Source: Macrostomum lignano (Eukaryota). Taken from it: a stretch of DNA of 64,000 nucleotides. The notes under the pieces were generated by a model. It had not been told where the DNA came from, made no database searches, and saw only the letters and a program-made list of their open reading frames with translations. The first letter of the stretch is position 1. The number at the start of each line of letters is the position of its first letter. The stretch is from contig NIVC01000326.1 of assembly GCA_002269645.1 (NCBI GenBank), positions 248,001 to 312,000 on the forward strand, written 5' to 3'. A program made the translations under genes and the position numbers. This document shows, in pieces, positions 45,597 through 51,868 of this stretch.

Positions 45597-48500
45597 TCAG
45601 CACTGTGGAATGTTGCACGTTTCCCATCTCCTCGACGTCCTGGTGTAGCACCACGGACGCTTCTCGCTGCTGGCAGTGGTGATGCGGCAGGTGTTTCCGA
45701 TCAGACGGGCCAGCTTCAGAGCAGTGTTGGGCACGTGGCAGGTTTTCCCCACTGTGCCGCTGGGGCAGCTCTTGATCTCCCAGCCCTGGCACGGCTTGCC
45801 GCTCCGGGTCACAGCGATGCCCGACACGAAGTTCTTCGTGCCTTTCTTGTAGCACTCGCGCAGTCCTGCAACACAGATTAAAAGACTAAAAGAACTGCCG
45901 AACATGATCTCTAATCTATTGTACTTAGCGAACGGAGGTTCTATTTGTACGAGCCAGTCTTTTTTTATTAGAGGCAGGGGGTTTGTGTGCACCCTGGCGC
46001 ACTTTAAGCGACATAGGCACACAACCGGCGAGAGGCATTACTGCTCATCCCGCCGACTCCCCTGAGCAGGCAGACAAGCGCGCGGATACGTACGCAGGCA
46101 CACACTCACACAGGAGTGTACAGCGGCCCTAACTTTACTTTATCGTTAGGCATGTACACTTCACTGCGCCTTGGGGGGTTGGCTCTCAAGGCCATTAATT
46201 GCACGAGCAGAGCCAAGCCGAAATTCCAATTCAGCCCCAAACTAATGTGACTGCACTTGGAATCGAGCCTGGGTCGCTGGCACACCACAGCTTGCGCTAG
46301 ACCGCTGGGCTACGCCCCCCCCCCTACGAGCTAGTCTACTGAAACCCTTATTTGCAATTGTCAGCGTCATAGCCAATCAGATAGCCAATGCTCAAGATTC
46401 AAGCTTCGCTTACTGACCTCCAACGTTCATTTCTCCTTTTTGATGCTAGCAATCGGCAGTCCATATCGGCAGCCTGATAATGATTGCTACAGGAATAGAA
46501 AGCGATATATGTGTTGCGCACTCACACGCGCTCACACAGGGTGTACAGCGGCCCTGACTTGCTAATCGTCAGATTGTACACTCTCTGTGCCTTGGGGGTT
46601 GGCCCTCATGTACAAACTAGCTGGCCACTATGATGTACTCACTGGGTCCGCAAAGAGGAATGTTGCAAGTTTCCCATCGAGTCGAAGTCTTCGTGTAACA
46701 CCACGGCTTGTTCGAGCCGCCTTGCTCCGTGAAGGTTCGGCACGTGTTGCCAGTGGATTGGGACGCTTTCACAGTAAGGTTGGGGACGTGGCAGGTCCTT
46801 TTCAGCGTATGCCAGGAACAATAACGAACCGTCCAGCTCTGGCACAGCCTGGAGCTCTTTGTTCGGCTCACTGAAGTACTGACAAAGTTCTTATTAGCGA
46901 AGTAGCACTCGCCAAACTCTGTGGGATGCAGGAGACGACCAACAAGAGCGATTAGAAACGTAACTTATGATTTGAGGGGTGCGTGAACTTCTTGGTGCAC
47001 ACCAGTAGGTTAACTTCTTCAATGCTTCCATAACACGTCTAACGCGTCGCGTAATAGTCTGTACACTCACAAGGCGCACGCTTATTGTGTAAATGCACTA
47101 CAAAAGCCAACGTTCTGTATGAAAATCGTTATTGCTAAAAACAACAAAATTCTTGAAGTTGAATTTCGGTTTGAAAAATGGCTATAATAAATATTCCCCA
47201 TTGGCAGCACTAGCCATAGTAGCTACCCATTGGCAGCACTAGCCATAGTAGCTACCCATTGGCAGCACTAGCCATAGTAGCTACCCATTGGCAGCACTAG
47301 CCATAGTAGCTAGCTACCCATTGGCGCAATCCTTTCTTGATTCTGAAAATAAGCAAACACAAGACACCAAAACTTACTGTAGCACTTGGTTCGCTGAGCG
47401 TTCGTAGCGATGGACCCGTACGGACACTTCATACAACGACTCGATCCTGATGACGGAGCGTAGTAGCCCAGAGAGCATTGCGTGCATCTCGACGAGCCGG
47501 CATTCGAAAACGAGCCTGCAGAACAAGGCCTGCAGTTTCTCGAACCTCGGCCGGGCGCGAATGTGCCAGCCTTGCACTTGCTGCAGGAAGCCGCTCCGGT
47601 AGACGAAATGTAGGTTCCGGGTGAGCAGTACTGGCAAGAGCCGCTGGAGTGGGCGTAGGATCCCGCTGGGCAGCTGGCACACCTTGTGGAGCCGGTTTTG
47701 GCCGTGACGCTACCGGCACTGCACTTTCTGCACTTGGAGGACCCACTTGATGAAGCGAAATAGTTTTTCTGACAAGGCAGGCAAGCGGAACTACTCGACT
47801 GACGAACTTTCGCGTTATAATGTCCGGCGGGACACTTTATGGGTCTTATAGAGCCTTTATTTGAAACATAGGTCCCCTGTGGTGCAATTTTACAGACCGC
47901 AGATCCTTCATTCGGCGCGTAGGTGCCCAGGTCGCAATGCTTGCATCCTTTCATCCCTTCGACTGGAGCATATTGACCCTTGGGACATCTCGAACAAGCT
48001 CGGGAACCAGAGCCTGGCGAAAACTGACCAACTGGACATTTTTTACAGCTAGTTGCCGAGCTGCTGAAGGTTCCAGCAGGACACTTTCGACAGGCAGAGC
48101 TGTTCGCCTGTCCTACTTGAGAGTTGACTGTACCAGCAGGGCAGCTTTGGTAACTTTTTGCTCCTCTTTGTGATACATACGTGCCTTTTGGAGCTTTGAT
48201 GCAAACAGACTGCCCCCATTCGGCTGGTATGAACCTGGGGCGCACTGCGAGCACTTCATCGAGCCCGCACTCTCGGAGAATGTACCTGGAGAGCACTTTT
48301 TGCATGGTTGACCTTTCGCGGGACTATACTCGCCTTTTTTGCACGAGTTGCTGCAAGTCCTGGAGCCCTCCACACTTGACGTACCGGCAGGACACTTGGT
48401 GCACTTTACCTGGCCCCTCTTTGCAGCCGAGAAGCCTCTGGAGCACGGCTTGCACTGCTTCAGCCCTTGCGAGTCTCCGTAGTGACCGTAAGGACACGGC

Positions 48501-51500: not shown

Positions 51501-51868
51501 GTTGGACCGCTCATGGTCTCCGTAATCTTCCAACCGGAAGGCTGGTAGTTTGTAAGTCCGTTGAAACCCTGGTTAGCCTGCACCGAAACGGTTCTACTGC
51601 CGGCCTTCTGCGGCAGGAACGTTCTCCCGGCCATCATGTTCTTCATGGTATCCTTTGTGATGAGCGCGCCAGGGTCTTTATTAACGGCGGACATGTGCTC
51701 GTTGACCAGCTGCTCAGACTTCTCGGCCGCCTTGTTGACGTTCGAAGCGACGGCGTCTGCTGCCTGTTGGTACTGAGCGACGTCAGGTTTCTTGCCTTTC
51801 GCGGCCTGCGCGCCGTGCAAGGCGATGCTCAGCGCCACTAGCACCGCTAGAAGTTGCGAGTGCCGCAT
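45597..51868 (-). CDS. Large secreted MACPF-domain protein with Gly-zipper insert, FAMeT-like domain, furin-like repeat, ~28 GCC2/GCC3-type Cys repeats and two kringles (~1,678 aa; 1-nt frameshift at ~48215)
   Basis: ATG 51868 (MRHSQLLAVLVALSIALHGAQA signal). Exons 51868-47378, 46918-46643, 45865-45597. MACPF motifs IGVGFDG and YQNFLLRWGTHFIRSGKFGG. One extra G in the 5-G run (48213-48217) restores a 5037-nt frame. Acceptor at 51895 and probable 5'-UTR donor GTAAGT at 52985. Confidence 0.88.
46083..46322 (-). mobile_element. tRNA-derived SINE, near full length, in MACPF intron 2
   Basis: A box TAGCCCAGCGG (46312-46302), B box GGCTCGATTCC (46269-46259), conserved structured 3' domain and TG-rich tail. 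Confidence 0.75.
46515..46612 (-). mobile_element. 5'-truncated copy of the same SINE
   Basis: GTGTACAGCGGCCCTGAC...TGTACAC...GGGGTTGGCCCTCA block. Confidence 0.7.
47197..47322. repeat. 29-bp repeat x4 in MACPF intron 1
   Basis: CCATTGGCAGCACTAGCCATAGTAGCTAC units. Confidence 0.9.

Follow-up and report, generated by a model that had tools for sequence, protein, structure and literature searches.

The locus considered here lies on the minus strand at positions 45597-51868 of a 64,000-nt stretch of the Macrostomum lignano contig NIVC01000326.1 (contig positions 248,001 to 312,000, hereafter the window), and it raises the question of whether a MACPF domain, a long cysteine-rich repeat region and two terminal kringles belong to one gene, and what kind of protein they would then form. 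An original prediction, made from the sequence alone, had described a giant secreted MACPF protein of unusual architecture. The gene is real and, in M. lignano, encodes a large, secreted MACPF protein of perforin-like type that has a long cationic stalk and two kringles; the very large secreted product is borne out by a 1,678-amino acid (aa) model, a Pfam MACPF match and a signal peptide recognised by eye. The architecture is genuine and lies outside the named MACPF classes, yet the protein, first taken to be new, is already deposited (PAA55510.1, PAA66254.1) and is one member of a conserved family.

Gene structure and the shortened G-run

A 23,756-bp stretch of NIVC01000326.1 from assembly Mlig_3_7 (GCA_002269645.1) occurs letter for letter within the window. 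The gene is spliced and its sequence is identical to an M. lignano scaffold, and on these grounds a prokaryotic or viral origin was rejected. Based on the list of open reading frames (ORFs) and on direct reading of the sequence, a three-exon gene for a large secreted MACPF protein extends over window positions 45597-51868 of the minus strand, from a start ATG at 51868 to a TGA stop at 45599-45597, which are exactly the limits first proposed. The parts of the gene are the following.

47378..51868, minus strand: exon 1, encoding aa 1-1497 and the first base of codon 1498, given one extra G in the G-run; ATG and donor read from the sequence
48213..48217, minus strand: G5 homopolymer, one base short; the frame shift leads to a stop at 48115-48113 and to the annotated 1,251-aa product
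46919..47377, minus strand: intron 1, GT...AG, holding a perfect 29-bp x4 array (47197-47312, Tandem Repeats Finder, TRF)
46643..46918, minus strand: exon 2, kringle 1, 276 nt, phase 1-1; splice sites from the sequence, Pfam Kringle and plasminogen alignment
45866..46642, minus strand: intron 2, GT...AG, read from the sequence
45597..45865, minus strand: exon 3, kringle 2 and TGA stop; final codons TGC TGA, Pfam Kringle over 79/79 model positions

The exon 1 ORF is open for 1,251 codons from the ATG and then shifts frame at the G5 run, where it joins an ORF in another frame (48305-47310) that carries on the same Cys-rich repeat. With one G added to this run the spliced coding sequence (CDS) is 5,037 nt long and translates to exactly 1,678 aa, reproducing the frame-corrected length that had been predicted. 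Exon 1, once the G is restored, has no in-frame stop before its donor (tac a/gtaagt, after 47378), and the acceptor before 46918 reads cccacag. Both introns are GT-AG and both kringle exons are phase 1.

The GenBank CDS at the window locus (48113-51868; P0202) is a single exon of 1,251 aa, which ends in 34 out-of-frame residues (...NGGSLFASKLQKARMYHKEEQKVTKAALLVQSTLK) and leaves out half of the stalk and both kringles. Two near-identical sister copies, BOX15_Mlig022132g1 (PAA66254.1) and BOX15_Mlig022132g2 (PAA55510.1), are annotated at 1,678 aa; they are labelled 'hypothetical protein' in GenBank, and the UniRef name is 'MACPF domain-containing protein'. We regard the window gene as one of three near-identical copies of the Mlig022132 gene cluster. 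Mlig_3_7 was assembled by Canu from PacBio reads and polished by Pilon with Illumina data; it is highly redundant owing to the DV1 karyotype, its gene models derive from StringTie/TACO RNA-seq assemblies and mapped de novo transcripts, and a common name prefix marks transcripts that cluster at 95% (PMC5730564).

Because the models of this assembly were built from transcripts, the joining of the kringles to exon 1 is transcript-derived in the sister copies. This bears on the alternative that the gene is a prediction chimera in which the kringle exons are part of a separate downstream gene, a reading suggested by the GenBank model at the window locus, which stops short of the kringle exons, and by UniRef entries for isolated fragments, 'Kringle domain-containing' (182 aa) and 'Ephrin_rec_like' (269 aa), that stem from an older annotation. 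The kringles are, however, joined in the transcript-derived models of two sister loci and in the paralogue Mlig027585g1 (P0208; 1,685 aa, 69% identical in the core), and the same MACPF-stalk-two-kringle layout in this paralogue leads us to treat a chimera as excluded. The compatible splice phases (1-1), the canonical GT-AG sites and the absence of an in-frame stop in exon 1 before the donor likewise speak against it, and the frameshift together with assembly fragmentation accounts for the UniRef fragments. A chimera is in our estimation extremely improbable, and the kringle exons do belong to the MACPF gene, as the original prediction had supposed.

The window and the g2 locus (L001) are colinear. 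Between the two, exon 1 differs by two synonymous substitutions and a single G indel and is otherwise identical, the G-run being GGGGG in the window versus GGGGGG in L001; the kringle exons are 2.2-2.5% different, equivalent to five amino acids. We consider it probable that the 1-bp deficit in the window copy is an assembly error rather than a real null allele. It is the single lesion in a 5 kb CDS, the downstream frame and splice sites are intact, and an older model from the ML2 assembly (P0206) has all five kringle residues specific to the window copy together with an intact NGGQSVC, and hence six G in its G-run.

If the window copy were a genuine null or truncated allele, G5 would be real, the locus would yield no more than the 1,251-aa product, if its transcript escaped nonsense-mediated decay at all, and the sister copies would supply the function. 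The difference between G5 here and G6 in the sister locus, the 1,251-aa GenBank annotation, the polishing of the assembly with Illumina and RNA-seq reads, and the extra gene copies in DV1, which would relax selection, are all compatible with such an allele. It is harder to reconcile with the absence of a second defect across the 5 kb coding sequence, with an exon 1 only two synonymous differences from its sister, with the intact frame and splice sites downstream, and with the intact frame of the ML2-based P0206, which carries the same kringle variants. Long-read assemblies are liable to homopolymer-length errors, which also counts against a null allele, the base assembly being PacBio, and we judge such an allele unlikely. 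Two points weigh against an assembly error, namely that Pilon polishing with Illumina data speaks somewhat against a leftover homopolymer error and that P0206 may come from a fourth copy. With an assembly error as the preferred reading, the 1,251-aa GenBank product at the window locus is probably cut short by a 1-bp homopolymer error; the predicted architecture and length stand for the gene, but the window copy is frameshifted as assembled.

The introns provide some further observations. Intron 1 of L001 holds ~2.4 kb of additional DNA (L001 14685-17122) at the position of the window's 29-bp x4 array, such that a large intronic indel separates the two copies despite their near-identical exon 1. 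Intron 2 of the window contains two copies of a ~75-bp element at ~46110-46610 (...ccaaccccc-aaggc.cag.g..gtgtaca...gggccgctgtacac.cctgtgtgag...) and a tRNA-like stretch at ~46260-46313 (gtagcccagcggtctagcgc...ggctcgattcc). These elements and the tRNA-like stretch may be the remnant of a short interspersed nuclear element; ARAGORN called no tRNAs in the window, leaving the tRNA-like stretch unconfirmed.

The MACPF core and its invertebrate family

The large first exon encodes all domains of the protein except the kringles. The putative transmembrane hairpin (TMH) regions of the MACPF domain are listed with it; AF2 denotes the AlphaFold models and pLDDT their per-residue confidence.

51800..51868, minus strand: signal peptide, aa 1-22/23, MRHSQLLAVLVALSIALHGAQA; judged by eye (charged n-region, hydrophobic core, AQA cleavage motif)
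51317..51799, minus strand: N-terminal extension, aa 24-184; from the family alignment and AF2 secondary structure
50165..51316, minus strand: MACPF domain, aa 185-568; from Pfam, the family profile and Foldseek
50819..51151, minus strand: TMH1 region, aa 240-350, 111 aa, unusually long; between central-sheet strands in the AF2 model, pLDDT <50
50918..51043, minus strand: glycine-zipper-like hydrophobic hairpin tip of TMH1, aa 276-317, GANLGGIGAIVGGAIGAVAGGPAGAGMGAQLGGAIGGSIGGG; 15 GxxxG motifs
50612..50671, minus strand: MACPF signature YQNFLLRWGTHFIRSGKFGG, aa 400-419; R-W-G-T-H and F-G-G invariant in 43/43 family members
50354..50581, minus strand: TMH2 region, aa 430-505, 76 aa, Ser/Lys/Gln-rich with GWSFLGFG at its centre; low AF2 confidence between sheet strands
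49370..50164, minus strand: family-specific middle region, aa 569-833, ~265 aa, mixed alpha/beta; AF2 pLDDT mostly 80-95, conserved across phyla
48914..49369, minus strand: ConA-like/galectin-like beta-sandwich, aa ~834-985; from Foldseek, the segment first called 'FAMeT-like'
47378..48913, minus strand: Cys-rich stalk, aa 986-1497 (512 aa), one furin-like unit followed by 28 Ephrin_rec_like half-repeats; from Pfam, repeat count and charge

The MACPF fold, with a predicted bent four-stranded sheet and two flanking TMH clusters, is confirmed by motif, by Pfam and by AlphaFold/Foldseek, in line with the original prediction, which had named InterPro/HHpred and AlphaFold as the means of checking it. 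Pfam MACPF (PF01823) matched with an E-value of 3.9e-12 and 47.2 bits (cut-off 21.5), and all 43 aligned relatives also match this model. The predicted IGVGFDG is found at aa 185, and the signature (Y/W)-G-(T/S)-H-(F/Y)-x6-G-G, located where it had been placed, corresponds to WGTHFIRSGKFGG at aa 407-419, in columns that are invariant in the family. The sole match of a single-sequence search against the PDB was a marginal one to GNIP1Aa, around the signature motif, and a profile search was needed for more: the 43-sequence family profile matched C8alpha (9e-5), C9 (5e-4), GNIP1Aa and perforin around the same motif. The AlphaFold model of aa 24-985 has a mean pLDDT of 70, with the sheet strands and downstream domains at 80-93, and its Foldseek matches, all with probability 1.00, include GNIP1Aa (2e-12), perforin (2e-10), MPEG1 (2e-9), Mpf2Ba1 (1e-9), C9 (5e-8), TgPLP1 and Plu-MACPF.

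The N-terminal extension is present as predicted, with a length of ~160 aa rather than 130. Helical and variable over its first ~90 aa, it is conserved across phyla in the final ~90 aa (PPG, YxYPxGxG, LMNGC, four Cys) and has no Pfam matches. On the other side of the MACPF domain, the middle region has no Pfam match at E<=10, and none of the top 50 Foldseek PDB matches of a separate AlphaFold model of aa 565-990 (pLDDT 85) covers it, all 50 aligning to the downstream sandwich. What had been described as a ~250-aa segment of unrecognised type is therefore, at ~265 aa and with neither Pfam nor top-50 PDB match, still unmatched, but it is a conserved family-specific region. The last ~150 aa of the same model form a ConA-like sandwich resembling the levanase C-terminal domain (2e-6), galectins (E ~1e-4, target TM-score 0.5-0.6), legume lectins and LamG. 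The beta-rich character once attributed to this segment is upheld as a beta-sandwich, but its FAMeT identity is not: the Methyltransf_FA label (PF12248) was rejected for aa ~834-985, since there is no match of that hidden Markov model in aa 625-985 at E<=10 and the fold is galectin/legume-lectin/LamG-like. Over the N-terminal extension, middle region and sandwich together, hmmscan at E<=10 returned only a chance-level FhbB match.

A search with the first 985 aa recovered four M. lignano paralogue groups with 56-69% identity, as well as amphioxus, anthozoan, Owenia, hemichordate and environmental proteins with 26-37% identity, most of which cover 54-98% of the query, and most at E-values of 1e-100 to 1e-170. 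In the family alignment, conservation extends from ~aa 110 to the furin-like unit, and RWGTH...FGG, several Cys and a GG hinge are invariant. When the 426 aa following the MACPF domain were searched exhaustively by phmmer against 1.84 billion representatives, they yielded 170 clusters at E<=1e-3 and 44 at E<=1e-30, and it was by this search that Lingula was recovered. Nearly all long matches lie at ~position 390-1,120, with room for an upstream MACPF domain; some lie nearer the N-terminus and are probably partial models. All names recovered for these matches were 'uncharacterized', 'hypothetical protein' or 'MACPF domain-containing' (Branchiostoma, Lingula, Nematostella), and a literature search found no paper describing a family of MACPF with the ~420-aa module.

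Judging from these sequence comparisons, MACPF with its ~420-aa downstream module defines a small uncharacterised family of cnidarians, amphioxus, a brachiopod, an annelid, a hemichordate and flatworms. The conserved core, likewise delimited by alignment, is taken to be the N-terminal ~985 aa, comprising the conserved part of the extension, the MACPF domain, the ~265-aa middle region and the ConA-like sandwich. The C-terminal trains that follow in the family include LamG/pentraxin, SRCR, F5/8C, C-lectin, SUEL, fn2, chitin-binding, D8C, Sushi/HYR/EGF and Ephrin_rec_like domains, and within the family kringles occur only in Macrostomum. The architecture, described at first as an unrecognised combination, is no one-off: its core is common to a conserved invertebrate family with interchangeable C-terminal modules.

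Stalk, kringles and candidate functions

Within the stalk, Pfam Ephrin_rec_like (GCC2_GCC3, PF07699) matched at 1e-21 and 8e-37 (76.9 and 125.2 bits, cut-off 23.1), and NCD3G/TNFR-type Pfam matches overlap the same Cys repeats. We counted 28 units of CxxG(T/S)(Y/F), in agreement with the ~28 first estimated, each of 15-20 aa (one longer) and together occupying aa 1026-1497. The furin-like repeat holds through family-level matches, Pfam Furin-like being found in three relatives and the family profile matching the IGF1R Cys-rich region at E 0.007. The two predicted kringles are well supported, with two stretches matching Pfam Kringle (PF00051; E 1.6e-13, 51.2 bits, cut-off 34.3) and a match to plasminogen at 2e-26; both have the six canonical Cys in alignment (1-6, 2-4, 3-5 spacing) and two extra Cys each. 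The aligned loops, CRTFTEQGGSNKPWC and CRITTASSEKRPWC, do not contain the acidic NPDxD pair that marks lysine-binding kringles of the plasminogen K1/K4 type. The protein ends within a kringle (...NIPQC), without a transmembrane segment.

The net charge is +57 for the stalk and +23 for the kringles. Stalk and kringles together amount to ~+68 in the kringle-bearing paralogue, as against +2 to +8 in paralogues without kringles. This joint occurrence of charge and kringles suggests binding to a polyanionic surface. In three Macrostomum-type paralogues (P0003, P0004 and P0005) the two kringles are replaced by a ~130-aa C-terminal beta-rich domain, for which a precomputed Pfam assignment (PF26010) exists in P0003 and P0005; the stalks of these three are near-neutral, so that terminal module and stalk charge co-vary.

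The two TMH regions are where a pore former would be expected to enter the membrane. The TMH1 tip has the form GANLGGIGAIVGGAIGAVAG-GP-AGAGMGAQLGGAIGGSIGGG, with a GGP turn at the exact midpoint of TMH1. The Gly-zipper insert, including GGPAGA, is common to the paralogues P0002 and P0003 and to an environmental relative (P0006), and its retention in the latter at only 34% identity indicates that it is constrained and not random low complexity. In cnidarians, amphioxus and Macrostomum, respectively, TMH1 is 39, 78 and 111 aa long and TMH2 40, 72 and 76 aa. At any TMH1 length, the most hydrophobic 9-mer lies at relative position 0.35-0.65 in 40 of the 42 members (mean 0.51, SD 0.09). In TMH2 it is central in 67% of members, with the hydrophobic peak of the M. 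lignano protein at relative position 0.48. Such a centred peak is where the tip of a membrane-inserting hairpin should be, and to this extent the sequence suggests insertion.

We lean, by a narrow margin and by analogy, towards the view that the secreted 1,678-aa mosaic forms beta-barrel pores while tethered to its target. Attachment to an anionic surface, for example a microbial envelope or glycan coat, would be through the terminal pair of kringles and the cationic, disulfide-rich stalk; the middle region and sandwich would take a membrane-proximal docking role comparable to C2 of perforin or P2 of MPEG1; the MACPF domains would oligomerise; and the long TMH1 together with TMH2 would unfurl to hairpins, the hydrophobic centres of which, with the Gly-zipper tip in TMH1, would enter the bilayer. 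A core that is kept while terminal binding modules are swapped among paralogues and orthologues fits a recognition-plus-effector family. These functional statements go no further than analogy with perforin (C2), MPEG1 (P2) and the lectin-delivered PV2 allows. The pore-forming immune effector or toxin originally envisaged is thus plausible, with the TMH1 peak centred in 40/42 members, while a lytic or immune role is something that we infer.

Several points weigh against pore formation. TMH1 and TMH2 are of low complexity, very polar outside their tips and modelled at pLDDT <50, with no clear alternating pattern; both kringles are without the acidic pair of lysine-binding kringles; docking by the middle region and sandwich is proposed by analogy only; and a literature search turned up no activity, expression or localisation data for family members. 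Several animal MACPF proteins, among them astrotactins, BRINPs and Torso-like, are not known to form pores. By comparison with these, the protein could be non-lytic, with a MACPF domain that serves as a scaffold for oligomerisation or recognition, be it in extracellular matrix or mucus, in adhesion or in development, and with a stalk and kringles that bind matrix. The polar, low-complexity TMH regions of 39-117 aa, lacking clear amphipathic alternation, would suit such a role. So would a net charge of +112 together with the Cys-rich, Lys/Ser-rich repeats, as befits a sticky secreted matrix protein; the adhesive proteins of M. lignano are likewise large repeat-and-EGF proteins (PMC6626399). Set against this are the strict conservation of the MACPF signature, QGG hinge and centred hydrophobic tips from cnidarians to chordates, C-terminal modules of lectin/SRCR/pentraxin type, which are typical of immune mosaics, and closest structural matches that are lytic MACPFs. 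We regard a non-lytic scaffold as somewhat unlikely.

A pore former could also serve as an offensive or defensive toxin, in prey or food handling or in an anti-predator secretion, and not in antimicrobial immunity. Animal MACPF toxins are on record, namely PsTX-60 and AvTX-60A of sea anemones and the lectin-delivered PV2 of the apple snail (bioRxiv 10.1101/2019.12.23.880021 for PV2), and the top structural matches of the M. lignano protein are the insecticidal toxins GNIP1Aa and Mpf2Ba1. The family, however, occurs in amphioxus, Lingula and Owenia, which feed by filtering or on deposits and are not venomous, and it carries modules of pattern-recognition type; the literature search turned up no sign of expression in glands or venom. 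We hold the toxin role to be quite unlikely.

Building on pore formation, we tentatively put forward the more specific and doubtful possibility that Mlig022132-type proteins are an unrecognised, pre-bilaterian class of lectin-tethered MACPF pore formers. Such a class would have its own docking module (middle region and ConA-like sandwich) and an extendable TMH1 (39, 78 and 111 aa) with a Gly-zipper tip in flatworms, would build an unusually tall barrel through a thick envelope or coat, and would choose its target by means of the cationic stalk and non-lysine-binding kringles. Should these proteins form pores, a recognition-plus-lysis lineage extending from cnidarians to chordates would join the short list of complement, perforin, MPEG1 and apextrin-type systems, and would offer a natural series of TMH lengths for the study of how barrel height is set. 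M. lignano is amenable to RNA interference and transgenesis (PMC5730564), which makes pore formation testable in this species.

Surroundings of the gene and known MACPF systems

Immediately upstream of the gene, a 23-bp minisatellite of ~32 copies with 90% matches (52127-52852) begins 259 bp from the ATG. DUF4735-family genes lie on both sides of the MACPF gene, at 58515-61708 and 41293-42384, both on the minus strand and annotated at 363 aa and 251 aa; they match each other at ~92%, and the same flanking arrangement is present at the sister locus L001. Further away, a unit of ~6.14 kb is duplicated in tandem at positions 11743-24142, and identical TRF arrays recur there, among other places at 11743-12846 and 17882-18985. 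The ORFs in each copy of this duplication include a TLC domain (12978-13547, 2.4e-39) as well as a homeodomain (16262-16741, 22401-22988), and they look like exons of a ceramide-synthase (LAG1/CerS)-like gene. TRF reported a total of 60 tandem-repeat rows in the window, some of them overlapping, and among them 25 bp x53 (58619-59954) and 24 bp x50 (25109-26331), a load that fits the 15% simple and tandem repeat content reported for the genome (PMC5730564).

Whole-protein Pfam scans at E<=0.01 found none of C2, TSP1 with LDLa, P2 with a transmembrane (TM) segment, or ApeC, the only matches being MACPF, Ephrin_rec_like-type Cys repeats and Kringle. The mismatch with perforin, complement, MPEG1 and apextrin that had been noted at the outset is therefore upheld. 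With perforin-1 and C9/C8alpha the M. lignano protein has in common the signature motif, the bent sheet with two TMH clusters, secretion, and ancillary domains C-terminal to MACPF. It differs from them in lacking C2, EGF, TSP1 and LDLa, in its identity of ~10%, and in having a 111-aa Gly-zipper TMH1, the ~420-aa module, the 512-aa stalk and kringles. GNIP1Aa (6fbm) and Mpf2Ba1 (8b6v) are the best structural matches (2e-12 and 1e-9, target TM-score 0.40-0.48) and likewise carry, after the MACPF domain, a C-terminal binding domain that is rich in beta structure. They are, in contrast, bacterial insecticidal toxins of ~500 aa with another type of C-terminal domain and without stalk or kringles, and identity is 10-11%.

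MPEG1/perforin-2 is, similarly, an ancient MACPF effector found from invertebrates to vertebrates (Foldseek 2e-9), and 13 MPEG1 genes have been reported in M. lignano (PMC10781884). Membership of MPEG1 was rejected because TM segment and P2 are missing: MPEG1 is a type I membrane protein with P2 and a cytosolic tail, unlike the M. lignano protein, which has no transmembrane segment, and the profile search of the PDB gave no MPEG1 sequence match. Apextrin/ApeC-MACPF and other invertebrate mosaic MACPFs resemble it as secreted MACPF proteins of marine invertebrates fused to a microbe- or glycan-binding module (PMC8361754, PMC9585378), but no ApeC was found here and the conserved core is different and much larger. 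In a similar combination, the apple-snail PV2 couples membrane attack by MACPF to targeting by a part of lectin type (bioRxiv 10.1101/2019.12.23.880021). It is an AB toxin built of two chains, with a tachylectin subunit, whereas the M. lignano protein is one chain of 1,678 aa, with kringles and Cys-rich repeats as its putative targeting modules.

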